A stretch of 17,311 nt of DNA, taken from assembly GCA_964035545.1 (NCBI GenBank), contig CAXIUT010000188.1, positions 1 through 17,311 on the forward strand. Reading direction: 5' to 3'. The stretch is from Bugula neritina. Taxonomy: Eukaryota; Animalia; Bryozoa. The notes beneath the pieces are model-generated. The model was not told the DNA's origin. It saw only the letters and a program-made list of their open reading frames with translations, and did not search any database. The first letter of the stretch is position 1. Every line of letters starts with the position of its first letter. Below, one piece after another: positions 1-17,311 of this stretch. The position numbers were made by a program, and so were the translations under genes.

Positions 1-71
1 CCCAACCCCAACCCCAACCCCAACCCCAACCCCAACCCCAACCCCAACCCCCAACCCCAACCCCAACCCCC
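1..71 (+). repeat. Left telomere, (CCCCAA)n, with a C5 variant at 48-52
   Basis: Tandem CCCCAA from base 1, C-rich on + strand as expected for a left chromosome end; same repeat unit as Tetrahymena (T2G4). Confidence 0.97.
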
Positions 72-265
72 GTAATGAATAATTACTTCAAGAAACCAAA
101 CCACTGATTTTGATTATATTTGTTGTTTATATTATCAAAATATTTAAAATTTAGCTAGTTTTGTTTTAAGTAGAAAACTTATTTAAATCGCTTTGTTATT
201 AGATTGATTATAGTTTGAAATAATGGCTATGATTTAGATTTAATAGTTATTTTTTTATTAGTTCA

Positions 266-592
266 ATGAAAGCTATCTTGATAGTTTTGGTTCTTATCGT
301 CCTCACCATTGCTCCTTCTCCAGATCTTGAAAAGTGTATCTAAGATAAATGTCCTGATCAATACTCAAAATGCAAAGCAACTAGAGGATGTGAAGATAAG
401 CTCAATAAATGTGAGGATAGATGTGGAGCAAAATTGGACCAGGCTTGCTGGACTCTCTGTTTGGGACTTCCTGGAGCTGCTGCAAACGTTGCCATATGCT
501 CTGTCAATCAGGGATGCATCTCAAAAATATCAAAATCAGACAGAATTGGATTAACTCTCTTGTAGGCCATCAATAACATCCAAGAAGAATGA
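266..592 (+). CDS. Small secreted cysteine-rich protein (108 aa, 10 Cys)
   Basis: ATG 266 to TGA 590-592, open when TAA/TAG are sense. MKAILIVLVLIVLTIA signal peptide, then CI*DKCPDQYSKCKATRGCEDKLNKCEDRCGAKLDQACWTLC...C...C. Confidence 0.85.
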
Positions 593-833
593 TCCAACAA
601 TCATGAATATAAACTATTCTTTGTTATAAAAATTTATTGATTTTATTCTTTTTGATGATAGATTTTTAATCAAAATCGTCATAATGATGAATCTTATAAA
701 AAGAAATCTTTCAATCAAAATAAAGAAAATAAGAAGAATAATAACCCTTTGAAACTCTTTTTTGAAAGGAAATAACTATCGCTGATATAATTGATATTGT
801 CTTATAATCCAGTTATGATAAGAAGTGGTAAAA

Positions 834-1229
834 TCAGCAAGTTGACGATTGATTGAGACCTACTTTTTAATGACATTTTCCACATCTATGTTATACATCT
901 TTGCACGAATTAAGGCATAAACAACATGCCCCAGTACAAAGAAAAGGCAAAAGCAAACAAATCCAAACCTTAGAAGCATAACCGTTTGTATATTCTATCT
1001 CACTCATTCCTAAGGAACCACATTTATGACAATTTATCATCACTGGTATTCTCGAAAAGTCTGCTACTCTGGGATAATCAGCTGGATGAGGATGTTAAAC
1101 AAAAACAAGATCTGCTTAGTTAGCTCCTTGTCCTACTGATGAAAAGTTACTATAGCTTTTGTAGATTGTATCGTTTTTAGGAGGAATTGGAGGGTTTATG
1201 TATCTGTCAAGTTGCTCAATATTCGACAT
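834..1229 (-). CDS. LITAF-domain (zf-LITAF-like) protein, 131 aa
   Basis: Pro-rich N-terminus, PVMINCHKC (CxxC), hydrophobic WICLLLPFLCTGACCLCL, CKDV*HRCGKC (HxCxxC); ends TGA 836-834. Confidence 0.9.
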
Positions 1230-1411
1230 TATTCGATTCTTACTGTTTTTCACAATTATTATATAGAACAACTGACAAGTTTTAGAAGAAAATAATAATC
1301 AAACTACAAACCTTAGCTCATATAAATGATTTCGAATAGAACTTTTAATTGTATTCTTTTTTTATTAAAGTTCATAAGTAAGTATAAATCAGGCAAAGGT
1401 TATAAATTTTA

Positions 1412-2247
1412 TCAGGGAATATAATAAATAGGTCCTGGACTTCTTTTATTCTTTTATTTCATGCATTATTATGTTATTGTGGTCTTAGCAGCTATCGAAA
1501 ATATATTTTTCTTTGATGATTTTCTTCTTGAATCAACATTTATATTTGGTGTATACTTTCCAGGTCCAATTAATGTGTTTTCTTAATAAAACCATAAATA
1601 CATAACTCTGAAACTAACCTTTGAGTTTTAGGGAAGGAAGCTTTTTTAGTATTTTTGAAATTTGATAAAGTCATTTTTCCTTCCTTCTCAAGATTTAGGT
1701 CATATTTACTGGGTTCAGGATTATGAGTTGGTTGAAGAAAGCTATCAGATGCTTGTTTTTTCCTCAAAGAAAACTTAGATCCTCGATGATACTTAGAAGT
1801 CGACTAAAATTGAGGATTATACTGAATTCACAAAAAAAATACATTTGTGCCTGAAGGATTCTAAATAAAAATAAAAATACTTTGTTAGCAATAGCTTTGG
1901 CAAGATAGTCATTATTTTTAACTTACTATATCGATGTAAAAATACTTCTCGACCGATTCCAAAAGAAACTCCTACTTTTTTTTATGAAGGAAGAGAATAC
2001 TAAGAAGCACAAGGGTTTTTTTCTGGAGGAGTGAAGAAGTATTTTTTTCCATAGCCAAAGGAACAGGTTCTGGTATCTCTTGGAGAAGAAATTTAAAAGA
2101 AATCAATGGTATAGCTATTTTATGAAAGATGTACCTTGATTTATGAGGAGAGAAACGTTGTGATTTACCAAAGGAATACTTATTTTTACGATCGTTTTTG
2201 AAATGAGATTTAGTGAGGATAGAATCAAGACCTGTTAGCTCCGACAT
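1412..2247 (-). CDS. STPG/SHIPPO (ODF3-like) repeat ciliary protein, ~244 aa, 5 introns
   Basis: Introns 2115-2134, 1926-1945, 1861-1880, 1822-1842, 1582-1601 give a 735-nt frame with KYSFGKSQRF, SFGYGKK, NPEPSKY, IGPGKY, SPGPIY motifs. Confidence 0.82.
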
Positions 2248-2474
2248 GATGATTATTATTTTTATTTTAGGAGTTAATTATTATTCTGAATAGTTAAAAT
2301 TTTAAGATATTCATTGAATGATCTTTATCAAGGAATTCATCTTAGAAAGAAATACTTATCATAAAGAAGTTTAGATTTTAAAAAAGATAAATAAAATTGA
2401 CTGAATCGAATGTTCTGATATTTATTTGATTAATTACAATAATATAAATGAACTAGACAAAGTGGTTTGTAGTA

Positions 2475-3011
2475 TCACAAAGAGTTGATAGATGACTCTA
2501 AAAGAGCTTTAACTCGACTGATCTTTTATAGTTTATGACTTTAATCTTGTTGTTGACCCAAAGGCTGTTGTTCAGAGTAGGTGGATGTGAAAGATGCATT
2601 GCCCTACAATTTATTAATCAACTTATGAATCAACTCCTATTGAAGAGCTATTATTGTCTTTTGTTCCTCTACCTATTGATGCAGTTTTTAGACCTAATGA
2701 AGACAATCTTATCTTGACTTCTATCGATATGAATTACCTTTTACTAAACCTATTGAGTTCCCAACGCTTCGATATTCTGGCAACTGATTGCTATTGGCTC
2801 GTACTAGAGTTTTAGTCAAGTTTTGCTTATTTATAGAGTTAGCATTGATGGGAGATAAAGGAATATTTGGAGATTTTTCAGATTGAAGAGCGCTTGTAGA
2901 GTTAATTTGAAGGTATTTATGAATTGTGCGAACTGAATGCGAGTTGATGTGGAGGTTTTGTGAGAAAAGAGAGTGATTAATTCCTGACTGAGATGATTTT
3001 TAAATTTACAT
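2475..3011 (-). CDS. Hypothetical protein with C-terminal coiled coil (178 aa)
   Basis: 537-nt ATG-to-TGA frame with TAR as sense; Glu/Gln/Leu-rich heptads (LH*V*KLHQ*VEEQKTIIALQ*ELIHKL). Confidence 0.65.
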
Positions 3012-3038
3012 ATTGTTTTTGATTCTATAATTAACGAT

Positions 3039-4566
3039 ATGAAGAAAAATGCAAGCTGTAAAGACATCAAAAATAATTACTTTGGGCCTTCCCCTCTAGG
3101 TAGTCCAACTCATGGCTATCGACCTATCTCTAGAAGGCCTAATATCGATCTTCCCTTCTATCGAAATGTGTCTCCAAGTAAGATTCCTATAATTTAGAAG
3201 TTTAGTACATGACCTCCACAAGGAATATTCAATAAAATGGGTTAAAAAAGAAAGTATTTTCAAGTGCAAGAATGCTACCAAAAAATAATTAAAATGTGAG
3301 CATGGTCAATATTGGTCCAGTTAGTCCTTTGGGGTAATCAAGTAAAGTATATGATCAACTGAAGAATAAAATTAACAATCTAGAAGGAAGATTAGTTGAT
3401 GTTAAGAAAAATTTTGAACTTTCTTTTCAAAAGAAGACTCAAGACCTGAGAACAGGTAAAGAAAAGACAGAAGGGAGTTGTTTGAAATTTAAAAATAAAT
3501 TTGATTTTGCCAAAAATAATGATAAGAACAAACTTACTATAAACATCAAACTTCAAAATTAAAATAAAATCAACAACAAAAAAACAGAAAACAACTCATT
3601 GAAACTAAAAGAAGCTAAGACTGATGAAATAAAATAAAATATTGTTCCTAAAAAATAAAAACCTGAAAGTATATTACAATAATATGTAACCACTTTTACT
3701 TGCAAGTAGCCTACTACTCTTACTCATTGTTAATCTGATGCGAATCTTTTCAAACCTCATAGAGTAGCTAAAGAAACTCAACTAAAAGAAAGATATTACA
3801 TAGATGCAGTTATAAATGCATTTGCCAGTAATAAATTGACCAGTTTTGATCAATTATGCAAAAACCATCTTATAACTTCGATTGATATTTTACAACTAGT
3901 CAAAAATAAAATGAAAAATAAACCTTAAAGACCAATTTCTAAGAGATTATTGCCTCCTACAAATAAACCAACTCTTATATTCGATTTAGATTAAACTTTG
4001 ATTCACTGTAACGAGAACAACAATATGCCAAGTGATGTTTCTCTTCCTATTCGTTTTCCAAATGGAGCAACAGTCACTGCCAGTATCAATATTCGTCCTT
4101 ATTTGAGTGAATGTCTTGAAGAATTATCAAAAAATTACTAACTTATTGTATTTACTGCCAGTCATTAGTGTTATGCCAATGTTATAATTGATTATATTGA
4201 TAAGAAGAAAAATATTAGTCATCGTTTCTTTAGAGATAGTTGTTGGAAAAGTTAATAAGGATTTTATGTGAAAGATCTTAGAATAATAGATAGAGATCTT
4301 AAAAATTGTCTACTAATCGATAATGTACATATATATTTATATAGGCTGCTTATAGTTACTGTCTACAATTAGATAATGGAGTGCCTATTGTTCCTTTCTA
4401 CAATAACAAGGCAGACCTTGAACTAAAATCTCTGGTCAACTATGTCAAGTATATCGGAAATAATTCTAATATCAGGTAAAGAAATGCTAGTATTATGAGA
4501 TTAGATGAATATGCTGAGATGAAATAGGCTAAATAACTGATCAAGAAGTTATATAGTCAAAATTGA
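3039..4566 (+). CDS. NIF/FCP1-type CTD small phosphatase-like protein (HAD family), ~495 aa, 2 introns
   Basis: TLIFDLD*TLIHC, INIRPYL, Y*LIVFTAS, FYVKDLR, LIDN|AAYSY, QLDNGVPIVPF; introns 3178-3197 and 4325-4344. Confidence 0.93.
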
Positions 4567-4622
4567 TTTAATTAAAAGTTAAGTTGTAACAAGTTTTATT
4601 AATAACAAATTTTATTAACGCT

Positions 4623-5114
4623 ATGCATCTGCCCTATAGAAACAGAAAGCAAACTTTACCTGTCGTTCGTGATCATAAATTAACACCCTATTTGACAGCT
4701 GTAGTCGATTATTCTCCTGTTCATAAAAATAGTATTTAAAAAATAATAGATAAACATGTTACTCCATTTAACCCGGATAGTCAAACTCTAACTTTCTACA
4801 AACCTCAAAGAAAAACTATGTATGGATCTAATAAAAGTCGAAAAGAGTTCGGAGGGAGTAAAGCATAAAAAAGATTTTAAAGAATAGAAGCCAGAGGTAC
4901 TATGAATCGAAATAAATCTAGTCAAATTGTTGATAAATCTGAAATTAAAGGATTCACTTAGTATAGACCTTATTTGCTTAGTAATCGAAAAAGTAATAGC
5001 ACTTTGAAAGTTAAAGTTTAGATAAAATAAGAAAAAGAGTTACCTGACTCTTTTTGTTAGTAGCTCTTACAGACATAGATATACAGTCTGTAGTAGCCGA
5101 GTGATTTTATTTGA
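4623..5114 (+). CDS. Hypothetical basic protein (163 aa)
   Basis: 492-nt ATG-to-TGA frame with TAR as sense; no recognisable motif. Confidence 0.62.
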
Positions 5115-5300
5115 ACTATTTTGTATAATTTTTACCTTGATATATTTATCAAAGATAGCTTTTTTAATAAAAAGCTAAAAAAATCAAGTTTACTGTTTAA
5201 TTTTTCTAGTTCTCATAGTGTTGATAAATTTACATATCATTTATTTTAGAATACAAATTAGCAATGAGATAATCAGTACAATATATGATAAATTCTTTAA

Positions 5301-5371
5301 GGGGTTGGGGTTGGGGTTGGGGTTGGGGTTGGGGTTGGGGTTGGGGGTTGGGGTTGGGGTTGGGGTTGGGG
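5301..5371 (+). repeat. Internal (TTGGGG)n array; right telomere of segment 1 joined to segment 2
   Basis: 12 G-runs, one G5 variant at 5343-5347 followed by 4 perfect repeats; preceded by ~185 nt AT-rich subtelomere-like DNA. Confidence 0.97.
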
Positions 5372-6485
5372 ATTTTCCCTTATCTTTTTTGCAGGAGCAT
5401 GCATTCCTTTTCGAATTTGCTTTACTTTCTGCTACTTTTCTGCATTTTCTTAGCTTATGAAGTTTGCTTTTCTATGACTAGTAATTCCTTTTTATTTTGT
5501 CTTTTTATTTTCTATCTGCGAACATCTTGTAAAACTTGTGTTTCTTGCTGCTTTACTAAGACACTTTTTCTCATATCAAGTTATATCTTTTTCTTTAGCT
5601 TAAGTTTCTTTTTCCTTAGATTCGATAAAATTGTCGACTGTTATTCATTATACATTCTAGGAGTTAACTATCTAACAGCTATTGGCTCTTCCAGATAGAT
5701 ATTGCCATCTGTTTCGTTGTTATCTTGATCATTTATATTCTTATTTAGATATTGTTTTTCATCTTCAGTTAATTTTTATTTTATGTTTTCAAAAGTAAGA
5801 TCAATATCTTTGACTATTTGTAGATCTTTTGCTGAGGGACATGCTTTAGTCAGATGTTTAATTTATTCTTTAATTTTGTTCAAAAGATAAACCAAATGAT
5901 GACGACTTACTTTTTTGCTAAAACACATCCTGATAATTAAAGTTTCAGAAATTTATTTATGAAAAAGAGATGCTTAATCAAGTTCTGTCGAATCCAAAAG
6001 GTTGCTTATGATTTAAATTGCTACTATTGCAAATCTGTAATATTCAGGCAAAAAAGCATGAGTTCGTTCTAAAAGTTTGGCACATATTTGTGTCAGAACG
6101 ATTCCTCTGGCTATGATCTTCGAATAGATAGAGATACTTTATTATTTTTAATTTTTTAGATGATTGATAATGGTCTCAACAATGATGGTAAATTCAAGAA
6201 TAAATGCCTGATAAAGTTTGTTCTCAGTTAACTGTTTGAAATTGCTTTTGATTAAATTTGACAGGGCATTAGCAGCTATTATTTTCTAGCTGACTCTAAG
6301 TTAGTTGAGGTAATTGAAGTACAAGAGTAGCTGTTGAACAATTGTTGGATATCAGTACCAGGTAATAATTTATTCTGAGGATGATGATGATTCGCACAAG
6401 CTAACAAAAGCTACTTGGTGAGATCGTTGAGTTGTTAAGGACTTTTTCTGAAGATTTAAGCTTGTTATGGTAGAAGAGTCTACAT
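5372..6485 (-). CDS. Nop14-like protein (C-terminal domain only), running into the telomere array with no stop codon
   Basis: ATG 6485; IARGIVLTQICAKLLERTHAFLPE and EPIAVR*LTPR plus a Lys/Glu-rich tail resemble the Nop14 C-terminal region (recall, not a search); one apparent frameshift near 6350. Confidence 0.55.
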
Positions 6486-6518
6486 TGATTAATATGTGAT
6501 CTATAAAAATATAACTCT

Positions 6519-7449
6519 ATGGCATAAAACGGAGCGTAAGCATATGATTATATAGAAAGGCTAAATTAATAGAACAACACATCAAACTCAAGGGTCAACT
6601 AAAGGAACTAGCTGCCTAAGATGGATGAAATAGCTTAGAAAGAGCGGGAACGTAAAAAAAAGAAACAGTTAAAATAATCAGATAGAAGAAGATTAAAGAG
6701 TTGTAGAACTTAAAAAAGAACTTAAAGACCAAGAAATTAGGATACAAAAAAACAAAGCTTAAATAACTAAGCTTAGAAGAAATCTTGACAGCAAGTACGA
6801 TATAAATAAGATTGTTTAAAAATAAAACGAGCTCAAGCATCTGAAAGGGCAACTTAAATCTCTTGAAGAAGAGAAATAGTCTCTTTAAAAATCAGAAAAA
6901 CACAAGAGAAGGCTCTCAAGAATAACTAAGACAGAGAGACTGCAAACAAAATATCTAGAATGGAAGAATAATTAAAAACAGCTTACTCAAAAAACAAAAA
7001 AGCAAGTAGAAACTATAAATGACAAAGAAAAACAGATCAGAAAATTACATGAACAGTATATTATTAAGGAATAAAAAGTCAGATAAATAGAAAATAAACT
7101 AAAAGAAAAGAAACCTCATGCCGAAGAAGTTAATGAACAAATGATTACTCAACTTGAAGAAGAAGTAAAAACTCTAGAAAATCAAAGAGCTTAGATATAA
7201 AAAGAAGGAAATGATAAAATTAGGGGTCTTGAAAGAGAAAGAAAGGATTTAAAAAGTTAGCTTTAAAAAAAGAAACTTATTTTGGAAGAAAAAGAAAAAG
7301 AATTGAGACTCAATCAACTTAAACACAAATAAATCATGAGATTAGTGAACTCAGCTCACGAAGAAGGAAAGGAAAAAGACAACAAAGAATAGAAGAGAGT
7401 TGTAAATAAGAGAGGGAAGATAAGCTCCTAAAATGTAGGGATAAGATGA
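6519..7449 (+). CDS. Coiled-coil protein with several apparent 1-nt indels; 3' end uncertain
   Basis: ATG 6519, 20-nt intron 6536-6555, long Glu/Lys-rich heptad sequence; frame shifts at ~6616, 6654-6661, ~6888, ~7000. Confidence 0.6.
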
Positions 7450-7539
7450 CGATATCATCGAGTAAAATCCTCATCCAAAGCTCCAGTAAAACCTAAGAAG
7501 AAGTAGTATGGATTTTGATCCAAATATGATGATTGATTC

Positions 7540-7764
7540 ATTCTGGCATATTAATTAATCATATTTACAGATTTTTATTTTTTAACATGAAGTGTGCTAA
7601 TTAAGAAAGAAATAGATATACAAGGACTTCTTTTATTTCATCTAAAGATTGCTCAGCTTTATTCATCAATTCGAGGGATCCTTTGAGACTTTAGAATTGG
7701 TAAGTTTGAGTGGCGGCTGTAGTAAGATTTAAAGTAGTTGTTTAAACAGTTGTTTGGAGCTCAT
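7540..7764 (-). CDS. Possible small hypothetical protein
   Basis: Open frame ELQTTV*TTTLNLTTAATQTYQF*SLKGSLELMNKAEQSLDEIKEVL; needs an indel after ATG 7764, end uncertain. Confidence 0.25.
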
Positions 7765-7783
7765 AATAATAATTTGCAAGTTG

Positions 7784-8842
7784 ATGAGTACTGGGTCGAG
7801 CATGGAGAAATCAAGGAGAGTTTTGGGTTATTACTAGATAATAAAGAAGTTGGGATAGGGAGCTTTCGGTTAAATATATCTCGGTCGTAATATTCGTGAT
7901 GGTTCAGAGGTAGCACTTAAGATAGAGAGTGCAAATGTTAAACGTAGCCAGTTGTTATTTGAAAGTAAATTCATAATAGATTTGGCAAAATCAAAAGAAA
8001 TAGGATAAGAAGTCAATATTCCTAATGTTTTCAATATCGGTAAGGAAGGAAATTGTTATGTAATGGTGATGGATTTGTTAGGAAACTCACTTTAAGATTT
8101 ATTAAATCTTTGTGAAAGAAAGTTTTCACTTAAAACAACTGTTTTGGTTGGAATTGATATGCTTAGACTCATAAAATTTGTTCATTCAAGAGGAGTATTA
8201 CACAGAGACATAAAACCAGATAATTTTTTAATTGGAAGAAAACAAAACATTTCAAAGGTATTCATGATTGATTTTGGCTTGGCTAAAAGGTTTCTTGGAA
8301 AATAAAAATAACATATTTCTTATAAAGATAATAAAGATCTCACAGGAACCGCCAGGTATTCTTTGTTCAACTTAGATATGCATCGATCAATACTCCATCT
8401 TGGAATTTAGCAAGGAAGACGAGATGATCTTGAGTCTCTTATCTATGTCCTCATTTATTTTTTGAAAGGAAGTCTTCCTTGGCAGTCCATGAAAGGAAAA
8501 TGTAAAAAGTAAAAATATGACAAAATTATGGAAAAAAAATTAACAATCCAACTTTCTCAACTTAATTAAGGTTTACCGAAAGAATTTCAGGAAATGTTAG
8601 CTTATGTGAGAACTTTACACTTCAATTCAACTCCTAATTATGACTACTTGGAATAAAAGTTAAAAGAGATTGCTGATAAGGAGGCTTTTAATTTATAAGT
8701 TCGTGATTTTGATTGGATTCAGGTTGTGAGAAGAAAATAGCTTAGAAGCAAAGACTTTCTGAACAGCAGAATCGAGTTCATATCTGATATGTTGTATAAT
8801 TTTATTAATCAAAGTAGTAGAAATGAATATGAAACCGTCTGA
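7784..8842 (+). CDS. CK1: Casein kinase 1 family Ser/Thr kinase
   Basis: [54 protein letters not shown]|[24 protein letters not shown]; intron 8356-8375; extra C at ~8395; stop is 8840-8842, or 8785-8787 if another indel. Confidence 0.95.
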
Positions 8843-9754
8843 GGCCTTTCGAACATCAACATTTAATCATGATTTTGGATTCAAAGAGTATATCACTCCT
8901 GGTTGCTAGTGTGATCCAAAAAAACAAATTTTGCAAAGAGAATTAGATGACTATAAACATCGACCTAAGCAGGGTAAATTTAAAGTGACAACAAAGGCGA
9001 TTGTCTGTCATTTTGATGAATTAGCAAAACTTACTAGTGCTAATCCAGCTCCTTCTAGGTACAAAACTGGAAATGATTTTATTAGGAGAAGTAAATCTTT
9101 ATCTCTTAAAAAAATAGTGGTGGATTTAAAATCTAATAAAAAGACATATTTAGATGAGATAACAGATTTCTAGAAGAAACACAAACCTCCTGCAGTTGGT
9201 AAAGCTGACCTGACTAAATACACAGATTTAGGAACAAAAAATTCTCACCTATAAAAAATAATCAATAAAGAATAAAAAATAAATAACTTTGATGATGTTG
9301 TAAAAGTAGCTGCAGAACTACCAGGACCTGGACAATTCAATCCTCATGTACAATCACATTAATCAAGAAAAGAGTAGATAAGTTGAAAGTTGACAGGACC
9401 ACTTACAAGGACTGGCAAAGTTATCATTCGACTAAAGAAAAGAAACTTAAGAGAGCAGTTTCAACTAAACTTGGTCCATCGACTTATAATCCTGTTGTAG
9501 CTGGTACGTTTTAGGAGTAGAGCAGTAGATAAGTCGAGAGTATTAATTTTATTATTTAGCCTATATCAAGATGGAGTCATGGAGTTATTGATATCAGAAA
9601 AGGAAGACGGTCTGATTACAAAGACCCAAGTCCTAGCAACTATGACACCATTCATCAATGGACTACTTCAAGAGATACCAGATAGAAAAAAGTTGGACAT
9701 ATAAATCTATTAAACAGAGTCAGCAGTGCCCATAATTTTGGAGTTTATCATTGA
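8823..9754 (+). CDS. STPG/SHIPPO-like repeat protein, 2 introns
   Basis: NPAPSRY, PPAVGK, LPGPGQFNPH, LGPSTYNP, DPSPSNY motifs; introns 9348-9367 and 9540-9559; one apparent extra T at 9509-9512. Confidence 0.75.
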
Positions 9755-9916
9755 TTAATAAGATTAATTATTTAATATATTGACAATAATAAAAGTAATG
9801 TATGTTAGTTAAATATCTTTTAAAATGATTTTCATAAGAATATTTTTTTCAATTTGAACCTTATCTAATATACATCGATTAAACTATAATAATAATTAAC
9901 AATAAAAGTAGATTAA

Positions 9917-10679
9917 TCAATTTCCTTTTCTATTTTGTTTTTGTTTTTGTTGTTAAATTCTTTTCATAAGAAAAGAAGGTATATTTTACATCTATTTTTA
10001 ATTTTATCCTCTTTTTTCTTCCATACTCAATCGTAAAAATTTATTTTTATTCTTGTATATTATTTCATCAGGACTTTCTGGTTCATCTTCGATTGTTTAA
10101 GCTATAAGCAATCTTCCATGAGAAAAAGAAGGCTTTAAGTTAAATTAAAGGACCACTAATTTATTTTTCTAATTTTTTACTAAATTGTTCTCTATAAAAA
10201 GATGAACTAAAATCTAAATGGTTTTCTTTACTACACTTTTTGTTCTGATGTTTGACTGATTTAGTATAAGAACTGTTTTTTTATTTAAAAGGACTAACTC
10301 TGTTCGAACTAAATTTTTATTCGAAATATGAACTCACAGTTTGCTTTTTTCGATCCTTTTTTTACCAAAACTTTAGGCAAAAATTAGTATTTATTATACA
10401 GATTATTTTTTTCATTTGTTTATTTACTTTTTTATATAAATACTGGAGAACTTTAAGTTTGATGTTTACGGAGAATTTATTCTATGGGTTTTGTTGATGG
10501 AGAAATATCATGTCTTTTGAAGTAGATTGATTAAGATTGATTTTAGTTAGTTGAGGGAGAAAGTAAAGACAGCTTGAACTAAGGTACCTTTTTCCTTTTG
10601 GGAGAACTTCTGTCATGACTATTATAGTATTTTCAATAAGAAGAATAAATTATTCTATCAGAAGCTTTTTACAATTCAT
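9917..10679 (-). CDS. Hypothetical Lys/Ser-rich protein; frame and boundaries uncertain
   Basis: Long TGA-free stretches on the minus strand (e.g. KVP*FKLSLLSPSTN...RHDISPSTKPIE, TIEDEPESPDEIIYK) that join only with frame changes. Confidence 0.4.
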
Positions 10680-10708
10680 AATAAATATGTTTTAATAAAG
10701 TTATTAGA

Positions 10709-11610
10709 TCACTTCTTGTGTGAATAAACATCTCCGTCATATTGTCCAAACTCTGAAGAGTTTTTATATGCTCCAGGTCCTGGCTTGAGACTAGAAGCCT
10801 TCACAAACTCATCAATTTTGGTTATTCTTTTAGCTGCATCAAATTTTGCATTCGTGCCACCTTTTTGAGATGAAATAAGATATTTACCAACATTGGAAAG
10901 GTTTGTAGGATTTTAATAGTTGCCAGGTCCGGGAACATCATTGTCTAAGTCAGAAAGATATACCTGCATTATGGAATCTTTTAGATTTATTACAGATAAA
11001 ACTTGTTTTTTTGAAATGACTGGCATAGAGGGTTTTTGATCCTTCTGGATTGTTATCATAATCAGCTGGTCCTGGAAATTTGTTCTGAGGTTAGATAGTT
11101 TTAGTTAGATCACGAGCTTTTAACTTTGAAGCCATTGAAAAAGAAGGAGCTCTTGAAGCTTTATATTCATTTTCAGAATCTAGATTATATCGGCCAATTC
11201 CAGGTTATTTTATTTTATTGGAATCAATATAAGAATTAAATACAATATTCTAGTTAAAAAATGACTTACTTCTCTACTAGATCCAATCGAAAATCCTTTT
11301 CTTTTTTTGGAATTTTAATCAAATAAACTTTTAGTTTCATATTTACCACCTTCAGGATTTTGTTAAGAATATTTAGTAAAATCAACTTTATTTCCATATC
11401 CCATGCCAGTTCCTGAATTCTTTTTAGCTATTTAAACACCTCCATAAGCATTAGTCGGACAACTAAATTATAAAAACATTACGTTGGTTTTTGTGTCTCA
11501 AATCTTGATGATTTGGAAAAAGTAAATGTTTGTTTGGTTGGAGATTTGTTGATTGAACTGTGGTTGATGGTATGGAAAGCTGCAACAGATGAGCAATATT
11601 TATCTTTCAT
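10709..11610 (-). CDS. STPG/SHIPPO (ODF3-like) repeat ciliary protein, 280 aa, 3 introns
   Basis: Introns 11463-11482, 11250-11269, 10945-10963 give an 843-nt frame; FTFSKSSRF, GMGYGNKVDFT, FPGPADY, VPGPGNY, KPGPGAY, SEFGQY. Confidence 0.9.
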
Positions 11611-11658
11611 TAAAATTATTAAGATGCTATTTAATAAAAAACAAATCAATAAAATGCA

Positions 11659-11740
11659 GGGTTGGGGTTGGGGTTGGGGTTGGGGTTGGGGTTGGGGTTG
11701 GGGTTGGGGTTGGGGGTTGGGGTTGGGGTTGGGGTTGGGG
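11659..11740 (+). repeat. Internal (TTGGGG)n array; right telomere of segment 2 joined to segment 3
   Basis: 82 nt of T2G4, G5 variant at 11712-11716 followed by 4 perfect repeats. Confidence 0.97.
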
Positions 11741-13633
11741 CTGAGAGTTATATTTGACAGACGATCTTTTTATGCATGATCTTCCAAATAATTAAGAGAT
11801 TGTTCAGTTAACTGATTGTAGCTAAGGTTGAGACTGTTAAGTTCTTGGCATCTCGTCAGTATTGTGGGGAAGATATCGTCTGTGATGCGATTATTCATCA
11901 ATTTAACTGATTTAAGTTTGTTTCTAGTTGGAATTAGTTCAGTAATAGTTAGTATAACTTTATCTCCAAGAAAAGCTCCTCCTAAATCAAGTACATCCAG
12001 ATGATCCTTTTCTAATTCTTCATAAATCTTCAAATATCTTTCAGGAAGGCATAATTTCTTTTTCTTTTTTAGATCTTTAGGACATAGCATACTTAAAAAT
12101 TCTTTCTAGGTTTTGTTAGAACTGTTAAAACTTTTGGAAATTGAGCTAACACTACTTCTATCAATGCTTTGAGAAAAAATATTTTTTTGAAGAGATACTT
12201 TATTCAAGATGGGAGTTTTTTTTAATTGACTACTTTTTTTTCTATAGTTAGGAAGATTTATTTGATGTGGAACCAGATCATGAGTTAATTCTTGACTAGA
12301 ATCGTCAAATTGTCTTATTGGTGGGATTGGACTAATACTTCTATTAAGGACAGGAGATTAAGGTTTTAAATCATTTATAAGCATTTCTTATTGATTTTTT
12401 GCTACACTACTTTTTGAAAATAAACTAATTAAACATCCTTTATCTTTATTTTTTGCCGTAGCAAATCTATTTGATTGAATCTTAGAACTCTTTTTCATTT
12501 CTAAAAAGTTATCAAATAAAGAATTTGGTATAGTTTATTACTTGAAACCAAAAGAATGAATTTCATCCTGAATCTAATTAGTAATCCTAGAATGATAGTT
12601 ATTAATTTATGCGATAAGAAATTATCCTTCTTGAGCTATATAGGAATTACTATGATTTCATTGACGTAATCAATGTATTGCTAGAAGTTATTAATTTGCA
12701 TAACTTTGGTAACTCCCTCTTTAATGTGATCAACTTTTTTATTAAATTAAATCATCTGAATCTCAAATTGTTAATTAGCAGTGTAAGATCTTAGTAGTTA
12801 TTATTTTGTCTATTGTAAAGTTACTTCTAATGATTTCTTTAGTTTTTTTTATAAATTATCAATCTATGATTGTAAAGAAGAAATAAAAGATGTAATTTTA
12901 TTTGTTTAAGTTTATTTTTTCAGTTCTATTTTATGTAATATTGTTTCCTCTATATTTTTCTGACTAACTTTCGCTTTGTTAGCATTTAGATTTTGACTAG
13001 TTTGTAAACATTGCTAAGCAAGAGATCCAAAATCAATAGCAAATTTATCATAAGGTATAATTTTATGACTTTTATGTTATCCAAAGAGTCCACAGTTAGC
13101 GCAAATCAAATCTTTATCCTCAAGACAGACTAGATCTGCCTTTTGAGCATGCAATAGACAAATATCGAATTGCTAAGGTTCAGAAACTGTAGGTTAGATT
13201 TGTTCTTTTGGTTTAGATTTTTATTTAAATTTAACTTAAATATTTTTATTTTTTGATTTATTGATTGATTTAAGGAGATTCTCTCTTTTACTTTCCATTA
13301 AGATATTTTATTATTTTATCTTTTTTTATATAGTTTCCACTTTTTTCTCATCTTATTTGATACTCCCTTCAACTTTGACTTTTTAAGAATGACTCTCATT
13401 ATTTTAATTGTTAAGAATAAGATTCAGCATATTCTCATTAGTTATAAAAGCTTCAAGAGTATGTTTTCTGCGATCGATTCTTTTGTAATCGATTGGACAA
13501 ACTAAATCAAAAAGATAATACGTATTTCAGATTTTAAGCATTGTAGACAGATAGTGTGTTCGCAATTGATCAGCATCTTTGGAGGATTTTCAGTTGAGTA
13601 AAGTTGTTCACATTTGGGGCATAAGATTGTCAT
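11741..13633 (-). CDS. RING - B-box - coiled-coil - LRR protein (TRIM/RBCC-like), 3'-truncated at the telomere array
   Basis: CPKC...CEHTICLQC...|CPID (RING), CLLH...LVCLEDKDLICANCGLFG*HKSH (B-box), heptads, then LDVLDLGG / LKSVKLMNNRITD / LNSLNLSYNQLTE / LSNITLS (LRRs); intron 13502-13521; frameshift near 12656. Confidence 0.85.
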
Positions 13634-13827
13634 AACAGACACCTATTATAATTATAATCATAGTTTTTTTTAATATAGATAGATGATTAAGATTAATAAT
13701 AAAAAACCTGTGAAAATAAATTAGTATTGATTAAGTAAAATATTCAATCGATAATTCTTATCTTATTAGTTGTCTAATATTTATATTTTGCCCAAATAAT
13801 GATGAATAAAATGTAAAAAGTGACTAA

Positions 13828-16800
13828 TCAATTTCTACGTCTTCTACTATTGGTAACAGCAAAGGGATCGACTAAAATAGTGGCAGACCCTCTTGAACCT
13901 TGATAGTTAAAACTGCACTGGACAGAGTAACTTTAGTTAGGTACTCCTGATGAATAAATCATCAAACAATCGAAAGTATTTAGCTATGGACTTTTTCTTT
14001 GCGAGCAGTAGACAGTAGGAATAGGTCCTTTTTTGAATTTAGTTTTGATGAAATTTTGACTTTCTTTAGGGTTATCAAATGTAAAGGTATTTTTAGTCTT
14101 CAAAGTTATAAATACATTATTGGAATTTATAACTGTGTTACCAGATTGGTATAAATTATTTTTTTTTCAGGTTTTGGAGGAGTAGGTTTTTGAGGTATTG
14201 GGTGGACAGGCGTAGTTATAATAGGAGTATTCGATCTACAGATAGATGGTTGTCCTGAACAGCGATATCCGCTTTGTATTTTACAACTTAAACAACCTGG
14301 AGAATACTTATTTCCAGTATCACAAGTTTAAGGAGAGACTACAAGTCCATCTCCACAAGTAGGAACACAACGACCTTATGAATTAGGCGAGTATCCACGC
14401 ATAGCACATGAAGTACATTTTGTAGCAGATGAACATGATTTACATGATCCAGGGCAAATGGCACAACCTACTTTTTTATCAAAATATTCTCCTTCTGGAC
14501 AAGTGATAGGTCTTAAGTTAACTTTAGAACAAGATCCGAAATTATTTTTATAAGAACCATGAGGACAAATACATCCATTTATCTATGGACTATACTGAGT
14601 ATTATGAGGGCAGATTGCGCATCCTCCTTGGAAAGCAAAATATCCTGCAGCACAAGAAAGCACACATATTCCACAGGAACTCTTAGCATATCCCTTTCGA
14701 CAGACGCATCTTCCATTTGATATGATCTGATTAGTTCCACAAGTATAACAGTTGCCTCTAGAATCAAGAATCTAATCGTTTTTACATTGACCTACGCAAC
14801 TAGATCCTTTACGAACTTTACCACCTGGACAGATACATTTTCTTTTTCCATCGTATATCATGTTGTTAGGACAAACAGAACAAACTCCATTGATCATGAA
14901 TCCATTCGATAAATTAGAGCATTTAGTACAAGTTCGGGCTGAATTATAAGCATAGCCAGCATTACAGACACATTTTCCTCCCTAAAGATGCTAGTTAGGT
15001 CCACAATCAGAACATCCATGAGGAGTGGCATAAGATCCAGATGGACAAACAGTACAAACTCCACTAATTCTACCTAATCCTTTCAAACACAAACATTGAT
15101 GAGTTTTACTGTCATAGTATTAATTAGTTGAACATTTTTTAGTACAAATACCATATTGATTGGTATAGAATCCTGGCTAACATTCACACTTGCTTTGAAG
15201 GAGATGGAATGAATAGGACAAGTTACACAATATCCATTGTTGATGAAATAGTTTTAAGGACAAACCTGGCAATCATTGTTTTGCAAACCGTAGCCAGGAT
15301 TACAAACACAGGAATTTACTTTTGAGTCGTATATTGAATTTTGGCCACAGACATAAATGCAAGAAGAAGTCTTTTCGCTCCAAATGGCTTTGTTTGGGCA
15401 TCGAGAACAATGTCCATTGTAGTTAGTATATCCATTATTACACTTACATGTACCATCAGATTGACGAGTACTGCCAACAGGACATGGAGTACCTTTTAAA
15501 CAAATGTTCTATGAGAAATAATATCCATTTTAGCATACACAAGTTTGAAGACCGTTGTCGAAAGAATGAGGAGGACATTTCTTTGGAGTCTTATTGGGTG
15601 GATGAGGACCTACAGGAGGGTGATGATGAGGTGGATTATTTGTTGGAGGAGATGGATGAGGTGGATGAGGTGTTGGAGGGGTTGGGTGTTGATGGGGAGG
15701 ATTATGAGGTGGGTAAGGTACAATTGGTAGTCCATAGTTGATGATAACAGGAATTGGGTTTGTTATGTGGATCGGAAGGCATATTCCATTAGAGTAAGAA
15801 TATCCAACTTAGCAGACACATTAGTGACCATTAAAGAAAGAATTTTAAGGACATCCTCCTTCAGGAATACGATATTTGGGAAGTTTTTTATGTTATTTTT
15901 TACCATGTATTTTATGATTTTTTTTAGAGTAAGGTACTGGCTTGTATTTAGGAATATACTTTTTAGTAATTTGGGATGGTCTTTAGGGTATTGGTGATCT
16001 AGATAGTCTTTATGGTCTTGATAGTCTTTGTGGTCTTTGTGGTCTTGATATTGATGATCTTGATAGTATTAATGGTCTTGATGATTTTGAAGGGTTTGAT
16101 GATTTTCTATTCATTGAAACTTGGCTGCCTGATATACATGCTATAGCTCCATCTTTGAACTTTTTTTATTAGGTTCCTTGAGGACATGAAGCAACACATA
16201 TTTTTCCAAAGGCGTAAGGCTCTTTTTAACACTTTGAACATAATTCTTTAGGAGAATTACCTGCGATGATATATATCAATCCAAAAGAATTAAACTACCT
16301 AGATGACTTGATTTTCAATTAGAAGTTTTTGTTGATTTAGCAAAAATAATCAAGAGGATTTTTTCCATCAACTGAAATATGAGTTAAGCCATAGATAAGA
16401 TAAGGAGTTTAATACAAACTATTACTAATATCTTTATTTTGTTAACCTTTAAAAGCAGCATTAGAATATGTTCCTCCATAGGCTGCAAATGATGAAGTAG
16501 AAGGAGAAAATGCAATAAAACTCAACCAAACACTTTTTATATTAGTTTTTTTGCCCATCATAACTTTTACTTTTAAAGTAGTTCCTTCAAGAATAGCTGG
16601 AGATAAAGCTATTTGAATAGCTTAAGAATCAGACATATATCCATTGATAAAAACTCTTGCGATAGGTTTATCAATTTGAGAAAAAGCATGCTGGATAGAT
16701 GTGGTTACTTATGCTACATTTCTTTATTTTAGGAGGTTAATAGATCTAAAATTACCAAGTTGAATTTCTTTATTTGCTGAGGCCCAAAAATTGAATCTTA

Positions 16801-17133
16801 TTTTTGTCCATATAGGTTTGTTATATGAGAAGATGAAGAGGATGGATGAAGGAGAAATGTGACTAGGTGCGATATAGTAAGAGTGGGGCCCGAAAGAAGA
16901 CACTGAGAAGTCTTGGAGTGCGATAGCGACTGAGGGAGTGCTTGGAAGTGCTTAGAGCATTGAATACTGAAAATTTTGTGATGAGTCTGGTTGAAAGATT
17001 GCTACTGTGATTTGAACTGAGTCTGAATGAGTAAATAAATACCAGCAACAAGATCGGGAATAAGGTAGTTCGCAGGACAGGAAGCCGATGCTAAATAGAT
17101 CAAGGTGAGGATGATCAAAATTGATTTTCTCAT
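13828..17133 (-). CDS. Large secreted cysteine-rich protein (~1090 aa): EGF/furin-like repeats, Pro/His-rich linker, Myxococcus-type Cys-rich repeat
   Basis: MRKSILIILTLIYLASA signal peptide; intron 17023-17042; many CxCxxGY...C and CxxC units; TCGDGLVVSP*TCDTGN...GC..C; TGA 13830-13828; two apparent 1-nt deletions (~15206, ~14160). Confidence 0.88.
15590..15725 (-). repeat. Low-complexity Pro/His-coding repeat (PPH/PHP) inside the Cys-rich gene
   Basis: Repeated CCA CCT CAT units; YPPHNPPHQHPTPPTPHPPHPSPPTNNPPHHHPPVGPHPP. Confidence 0.8.
15975..16105 (-). repeat. Degenerate short tandem repeat coding SRPQR/RLSRP units
   Basis: Repeated TCAAGACCA / CAAAGACTA; SRPQRPQRLSRP*RLSR. Confidence 0.7.
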
Positions 17134-17228
17134 CTTATTAATTTTAGAAGAAGTTAAAAATTGCGTTTTATAGATGTCAAAATAACGATTTATTACTATT
17201 AATAATAAAATATACTTATTCATATTTA

Positions 17229-17311
17229 TTGGGGTTGGGGTTGGGGTTGGGGTTGGGGTTGGGGTTGGGGTTGGGGTTGGGGTTGGGGTTGGGGTTGGGG
17301 TTGGGGTTGGG
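17229..17311 (+). repeat. Right telomere, (TTGGGG)n
   Basis: Perfect T2G4 repeats to the end of the window, correct polarity for a right end. Confidence 0.97.

Follow-up and report, generated by a model that had tools for sequence, protein, structure and literature searches.

The stretch analysed here (the window) comprises the 17,311 bases of contig CAXIUT010000188.1 from the Bugula neritina assembly GCA_964035545.1, and our subject is the genetic code in which its genes are written, a code in which TAA and TAG very probably both stand for glutamate. The window has a G+C content of about 30% across its length and contains four telomere-type tracts, found by a regular-expression scan and by direct reading, from which it follows that it consists of three telomere-bounded units, each of 5–6 kb; the DNA is ciliate macronuclear, with C4A2/G4T2 telomeres. 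When TGA is taken as the sole stop, long open reading frames (ORFs) with many in-frame TAA and TAG codons (jointly TAR, R being A or G) appear on both strands, and the pieces between these codons match the Pfam families Pkinase, NIF, zf-LITAF-like, zf-B_box and LRR, colinear with the profiles. The genes include a casein kinase 1 (CK1), a phosphatase of the NIF family and several others, some of them with orthologues in relatives (Table 1). Two of these relatives are referred to by handle: L010/L015, a 16,189-nt metagenome contig from the Joint Genome Institute (JGI) with 42% G+C and a terminal G4T2 telomere, which is syntenic with units 1 and 2 of the window, and L001, the JGI contig Ga0169931_10017972 (9,248 nt, 24% G+C), which belongs to a more distant relative.

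Table 1. Genes, codons and telomere tracts of the window; "column" refers to the alignment of CK1 homologues.
Feature	Position	Strand	Description	Basis or comparison
CK1 gene	7802–8842	+	20-nt intron 8356–8375; TGA 8840–8842	Pfam Pkinase; 61-homologue alignment; L015 orthologue, 84% identity
TAA in CK1	7871			column E 19, D 15
TAA in CK1	8093–8095	+	SL[E]DL	column E 48/61; close fragments E 18/18; TAG in L015
TAA in CK1	8309			column K 12, Q 11
TAG in CK1	8408–8410	+	HLGI[E]Q	column E 52/61; close fragments E 3/3; GAA in L015
TAA in CK1	8510–8512	+	KK[x]KY	column Q 18, E 15, D 9; L015 also TAA
TAA in CK1	8696			column D 42–43
NIF/FCP-SCP-type phosphatase gene	3302–4566	+	start approximate; exon 1 to 4324, intron 4325–4344 (20-nt GT..AG), exon 2 4345–4566; TGA end	see text
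TAA in phosphatase	3992–3994	+	E of catalytic DLDETL	opposite E of SCP2; TAG in L015
TAA in phosphatase	4139–4141	+	before LIVFTAS	E in CTDNEP1 (QWYELVVFTAS) and SCP1 (ELFECVLFTAS); GAA in L015
TAG in phosphatase	4166–4168	+	after FTASH	E in CTDNEP1, A in SCP1; TAA in L015
Polymorphic codon	9315–9317	+	GAA in window (E of VAAELPGPG)	TAG in runs X1 and X3
LITAF-like zinc-ribbon gene	834–1229	-	TGA end; TAA 891–893 after KDV	Pfam zf-LITAF-like, E 5e-8
TAA in Cys-rich surface-type protein	14328–14330	-	gene ~13830–17140	position confirmed in frame
Coiled-coil protein gene	6553–7533	+	frame broken by one-base indels at 6615, 6671, 6974 and 7414	synonymous third-position differences between runs at 6828–6873; orthologue L010 3177–4161, 55–78% identity
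B-box and LRR protein gene	11741–13620	-		Pfam zf-B_box and LRR; orthologue L001 3243–5186
(CCCCAA)n	6–71		left telomere, unit 1	regular-expression scan and direct reading
(GGGGTT)n	5301–5371		right telomere, unit 1; unit 2 directly after, without left telomere	scan and junction analysis
(GGGGTT)n	11664–11740		right telomere, unit 2; unit 3 directly after	
(GGGGTT)n	17231–17311		right telomere, unit 3	

Within the stretches whose coding status is backed by homology or by orthologues (2,905 codons), TAA occurs in frame 72 times, TAG 26 times and TGA never, while TGA triplets number 50 and 102 in the remaining two frames. TAA and TAG make up about 3.4% of the codons of these genes, next to 4.2% for GAR and 3.5% for CAR; these frequencies are too alike to discriminate between glutamate and glutamine, and codon usage was rejected as a test of the two. 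The first-pass annotation of this DNA had stated that every complete gene ends in TGA, which is true of the genes that we modelled: those for a secreted protein (590–592), the LITAF-like protein (836–834), the phosphatase (4564–4566) and CK1 (8840–8842). UGA is thus the only stop of these genes and not a sense codon, as in NCBI translation table 30. Likewise, the six TAA and TAG codons on which that annotation had relied all lie where it had placed them, in frame and within TGA-delimited ORFs. An exact look-up with a 106-residue ORF of the window returned no record.

The phosphatase gene was recognised from Pfam NIF matches on four colinear pieces, from alignments with the CTDNEP1 and SCP1 chains of PDB, and from its orthologue at 7524–8710 of L015. 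We searched the PDB sequences with short stretches of the protein (51–52 residues) in which each TAA or TAG was written as X. Two of its TAA codons had been proposed to be the glutamates of DLD[TAA]TL and Y[TAA]LIVFTAS, and both proposals hold. The TAA at 3992 aligns with the E of VVIDLDETLVHSS in SCP2, with a weak E-value (0.38, for a 52-residue query), but the NIF profile and the CTDNEP1/SCP1 match already fix the family; the T that follows this codon corresponds to position 10 of the Pfam NIF profile. The TAA at 4139 falls opposite E in both CTDNEP1 and SCP1 and is replaced by GAA in the syntenic orthologue, where GAR accounts for 6 of the 12 pairs of TAR with a sense codon in this gene. 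Other searches were less productive: phmmer comparisons of single inter-stop pieces with PDB were of no use, either with the NIF pieces or with one from CK1, a word search with a 48-residue NIF piece yielded no candidate, a 21-residue N-terminal NIF piece had no Pfam match at E ≤ 10, and our literature search turned up no paper containing 'DLDETL'.

For CK1, a library-wide search with a 69-residue piece returned 150 representatives, of which the 61 spanning the kinase domain were aligned with the window protein, X standing at every TAA and TAG. The readings SL[TAA]DL and HLGI[TAG]QGRRDD, both with glutamate at the former stop, are borne out by the family: the columns of TAA 8093 and TAG 8408 are dominated by E (Table 1), Q occurs in them in only 1 and 3 of the 61 homologues, and none has K at the former. 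Beyond the tabulated columns, those holding TAR are variable, K being present 20 times at TAA 8567. The weighted log-odds over 11 usable columns were +7.6 for E, +0.5 for K, +0.5 for S and −1.6 for Q; TAA alone gave +5.1 for E, +0.6 for K and −2.4 for Q, and TAG alone, with three columns, +2.5 for E. Tyrosine, the reading of Mesodinium, scored far below zero and was discarded. Seen from the other side, the columns with at least 60% E are occupied in the window by GAA twice, GAG twice, TAA, TAG and AAA, those with at least 60% K by AAA or AAG only, and those with at least 60% Q by CAA, CAG and GAT. The last result, together with the pairing of CAR with Q at 74 of 116 orthologous positions, agrees with the earlier remark that conserved glutamine sites use CAA and CAG.

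These columns bear directly on the common ciliate code (table 6), in which TAA and TAG would be glutamine and the glutamate-like sites a product of chance. What speaks for it is the column of TAA 8510, where Q is the commonest residue (18 of 61), the mixture of K and Q at 8309, and three TAR–Gln pairs among the orthologues described below. Yet Q is nearly missing from the two strongly conserved TAR columns, the log-odds are negative for Q and strongly positive for E, the conserved Q columns hold CAA and CAG, and among the orthologues TAR–GAR pairs are about ten times commoner than TAR–CAR pairs; TAR codons gathered in glutamine columns and exchanging with CAR, as table 6 would have it, are not what we see, and we consider this code very improbable here.

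A word search with a CK1 piece also recovered metagenome ORF fragments that are 66–92% identical to the window protein. At the TAR positions of the window, besides 8093 and 8408 (Table 1), they have E at 8006 (3 of 3) and D or E at 8303 (9 and 6, respectively), and the closest of them (85% identity), which covers three of the TAR sites, has E at each. Several fragments terminate exactly at TAR positions of the window, which indicates that the organisms concerned have TAR there too.

The comparison with syntenic relatives is the strongest test, since the codons examined are those of the window itself. Totalled over three orthologue comparisons involving three metagenome contigs, 83 TAR codons of the window face a sense codon, which specifies Glu in 39 cases, Asp in 4, Gln in 3 and Lys in 3. 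The contig L010/L015, retrieved because it encodes one of the CK1 fragments, contributed 1,412 aligned codon pairs. Here the window TAR faces E at 28 of 49 positions (TAA–GAA 10, TAA–GAG 9, TAG–GAA 7 and TAG–GAG 2), D at 4, Q at 2 and K at 1. In the reverse direction, the TAR of the relative faces E of the window in 12 of 27 cases, TAG standing opposite a window GAR seven times, and 16 further pairs have TAR on both sides. TAR is the partner of 40 of the 229 GAR codons, of 4 of the 116 CAR codons and essentially never of AAR; Lys takes up 3 of all 76 TAA/TAG pairs with L010, one on the window side and two on that of the relative. Within the CK1 orthologue, the 12 TAR codons of the window correspond to GAA or GAG (7), TAR (4) and GGT (1), and the LGxGAFGxIYLG of the window reads LGEGAFGEIYLG. 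The more distant L001 behaves in the same manner: its B-box/LRR orthologue gives 14 pairs of TAR with E and 2 with Q, TAR being the commonest partner of E; its RPS8 gene has two TAA codons at positions where orthologues have E in 62 of 80 and 68 of 70 sequences; and its Aurora-like kinase and EB1 genes have TAR directly after HRDIKP and AK(ND)Y, up to which the solved kinases and EB1 match, the next residue in these proteins being presumably E.

A split code of the type described for Oligohymenophorea sp. PL0344, with UAA as lysine and UAG as glutamate, has to be weighed at this point, since it is known in what is probably the same ciliate class (PMC10553269) and some TAA codons of CK1 do lie in K-rich, variable columns (K 20 at 8567 and 12 at 8309). 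No K is found at the conserved TAA columns, however: TAA 8093 is opposite E in 48 of 61 homologues and in all 18 close fragments, without K; the TAAs at 4139 and 3992 are both opposite E; TAA taken alone favours E over K in the log-odds; and in L010 TAA pairs 19 times with GAA or GAG, against a single pairing with Lys for the window TAR as a whole. We regard such a split as highly unlikely.

Somewhat less remote, although still improbable, is an ambiguous or transitional decoding, in which TAA and TAG would be mostly Glu and partly Gln, as a relic of a switch from the latter to the former. The ancestor of Oligohymenophorea is inferred to have read UAR as Gln (PMC10553269), and a few TAR codons occupy columns that favour Q; the first-pass annotation had left out the TAA codons in non-Glu columns (8510 and 8309). 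But the Q-favouring columns are variable and rich in E as well (15 against 18 at 8510), and the TAR–Q pairs, 4 of 76, are of the same order as GAR–Q pairs, with no excess over a plain glutamate codon. The TAA codons in mixed Gln/Glu columns do not demonstrate ambiguity, which is not supported by our data.

The comparison with sequencing data points the same way as the orthologues. Contigs of four public runs (X1, X3, X4 and X5) were compared with positions 5500–11499, and 40 of the 102 differences were listed. Most are synonymous third-position changes in coding frames, including eight consecutive ones at 6828–6873. One codon exchanges GAA for TAG (9315–9317, Table 1), and a minus-strand GAA at 10190 is TAA in X1, adjoining a synonymous AGA>CGA change; an exchange between CAR and TAR in a coding frame was not seen among the 40 differences listed. 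The same comparison reveals errors in the window, which has extra bases relative to the Illumina-based contigs at 6615, 6671, 6974, 7414, 7712, 8395, 9281, 9514, 10150 and 10357 and lacks bases after 9235 and after 10518, which makes 12 one-base indels, with four others in addition, at about one per 500 nt of this region; they produce false frameshifts. The extra base 8395 lies in CK1, where GTARYASINTHLGIEQ can be read only when it is removed; a programmed +1 frameshift at this site was ruled out, the base being missing from the Illumina-based contigs. About a dozen such errors might suggest that TAA and TAG are true stops after all, and the ORFs pseudogenes or assembly artefacts. Against this, the domains remain in frame and in profile order through 98 TAR codons, the differences between runs are mostly synonymous, and three independent metagenome contigs have orthologues with unchanged frames, in which the corresponding sites are again TAR or GAR; we give this explanation practically no chance.

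We therefore conclude, with high confidence, that UAA and UAG are both read as glutamate and that UGA is the sole stop, which is NCBI table 30. For UAA, the evidence is the E column of TAA 8093, the position of TAA 4139 and 3992 opposite E, and the 19 TAA–GAR pairs in the syntenic orthologue; for UAG, it is the E column of TAG 8408, the nine pairs of a window TAG with GAR, and the GAA/TAG polymorphism at 9315–9317. Family columns, solved structures, three syntenic relatives and this polymorphism all agree with what the first-pass annotation had put forward, namely a table 30-like reading as Glu and not as Gln. Several points weigh against this conclusion: (i) two of the six codons that had been cited, those of the LITAF-like and Cys-rich genes, were not corroborated as Glu; the LITAF piece preceding TAA 893–891 matches positions 3–55 of the zf-LITAF-like profile, and the Cys-rich pieces flanking TAA 14330–14328 match no Pfam family at E ≤ 10, leaving the proposed 'ExCDxGN' consensus without support. 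(ii) The CK1 support specific to TAG is thin, with three columns. (iii) For a minority of TAA codons, those at 8510 and 8309, the residue most often found in the column is Gln or Lys. (iv) TAR faces Gln in 3 of the 83 orthologue pairs. (v) The assignment is drawn from comparisons of sequences. (vi) The window contains no suppressor tRNA, eRF1 or rRNA gene; the searches found no tRNA genes in the window or in nine related loci, and no Rfam family or rRNA in the window or its relatives. By analogy with the reassigned codes of other ciliates, tRNA-Glu species with UUA and CUA anticodons would read UAA and UAG, and eRF1 would no longer recognise these codons, its action being restricted to UGA (PMC10553269).

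As for the organism, it is probably a peritrich, or failing that an oligohymenophorean of another kind. The C4A2 telomeres, the 20-nt introns and the RPS8 of L001 fit an oligohymenophorean and are indirect evidence, which places the organism neither inside nor outside Peritrichia; among PDB entries, this RPS8 scores best with 4bts/4v5o, the Tetrahymena 40S subunit. G4T2 is the telomere repeat of the Tetrahymena type. The two introns recognised, that of the phosphatase (phase 0) and that of CK1, are both 20-nt GT..AG introns, the latter not being present in the L015 orthologue; they agree with the introns reported for peritrichs and Paramecium, which are short and vary little in length (PMC13685798), and the C4A2/G4T2 repeats are unlike the C4A3 repeats of phyllopharyngeans (PMC11687900). 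As the first-pass annotation had said, UAR as Glu is rare and known from peritrichs, the only ciliates listed with this assignment together with UGA as stop (PMC10553269, 2023; PMC11687900, 2024). The peritrich nuclear code (table 30; Vorticella, Opisthonecta, Carchesium and Campanella) shares with the window UAA and UAG as Glu, UGA as sole stop and its occurrence in ciliate macronuclear DNA, and there is no difference in the code itself. Other known codes differ: the ciliate/dasycladacean/Hexamita code of Tetrahymena, Paramecium and Oxytricha (table 6) has the same sense UAA/UAG and stop UGA, with Gln in place of Glu; that of PL0344, probably from the same ciliate class, has the same UAG and UGA, whereas UAA is Lys (PMC10553269); and the nonstop code of Blastocrithidia (table 31; PMC12153298) has UAR as Glu, but it belongs to a trypanosomatid, with UGA as a sense codon for Trp and UAA doubling as a stop, while the window has ciliate telomeres and no in-frame UGA in the validated stretches. 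There is a small chance, in our estimate, that the organism lies outside the peritrichs, which would mean a second origin of UAR as Glu in ciliates, or that a subset of TAA and TAG is still Gln.

Only unit 1 of the three units has telomeres at both ends; neither unit 2 nor unit 3 has a (CCCCAA)n left telomere. Directly after each internal (GGGGTT)n tract (5301–5372 and 11664–11741, with the junction base) the DNA is already inside a minus-strand gene, within its 3' end. One of these genes, from 5372 to about 6280 (its 5' end is approximate), has no stop before the repeat, and the B-box/LRR gene, a single gene in L001, is cut at 11741 and about 27 codons short in the window. Rather than two clean chromosome ends, the junctions suggest a mis-join or a mixture of chromosome isoforms. 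A minus-strand TAG at 6288–6286, which is TAT (Tyr) in run X1 (a listed difference at 6286), precedes the first ATG of the ORF and is therefore probably outside the coding sequence. In L015, positions 7532–16189 match 3343–9780 of the window, so that the phosphatase gene and the block of coiled-coil, CK1 and PG-repeat genes are on one molecule, separated by about 1.1 kb with no telomere, and the contig reaches its terminal telomere where the window runs 1.9 kb further. Hence, either the break points of chromosomes differ between relatives or the internal telomere of the window is an alternative break site. Neither the telomeres nor the chromosome sizes of peritrichs were described in the literature that we searched.

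Among the remaining genes, the Cys-rich protein is large and probably surface-exposed, with many CxxC-type repeats, a His/Pro-rich low-complexity region at about 15560–15720, and weak matches only, to TNFR and EGF-like models. Three genes, at 8860–9750 (+), 10709–11497 (-) and about 1460–2250 (-), encode PGPGxY and GxSxRF repeats reminiscent of the sperm-tail PG-rich (SHIPPO/STPGR) repeat proteins; the two PG-repeat pieces tried matched no Pfam family at E ≤ 10, and neither did the tail of the B-box protein.

Organisms that use TAR as Glu are abundant in public metagenomes (L001–L009 and P0151–P0270), where standard gene callers cut such genes at TAR: RPS8 products of 191 amino acids end exactly after the LEGKEL of a conserved LEGKELE. 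A transcriptome set of Gracilaria changii and a record of Sphagnum balticum contain near-identical RPS8 sequences, which are presumably contaminant ciliate sequence.

This variant of the code has already been described, and recognising it here matters mainly for correct translation. With the standard code, nearly every gene of the assembly would be broken; with table 6, Gln would be placed where Glu belongs, including the catalytic DLDETL position and conserved positions of the kinase. Table 30 is the appropriate choice for annotating this genome, and where other parts of the assembly seem to have frameshifts or in-frame TGAs, comparison with short reads should come first. The window provides a further, well-supported genomic instance of the peritrich-type code, found here on small chromosomes that carry several genes and are capped by telomeres. 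Related organisms that share this code are common in metagenomes, their genes being fragmented by standard gene callers.

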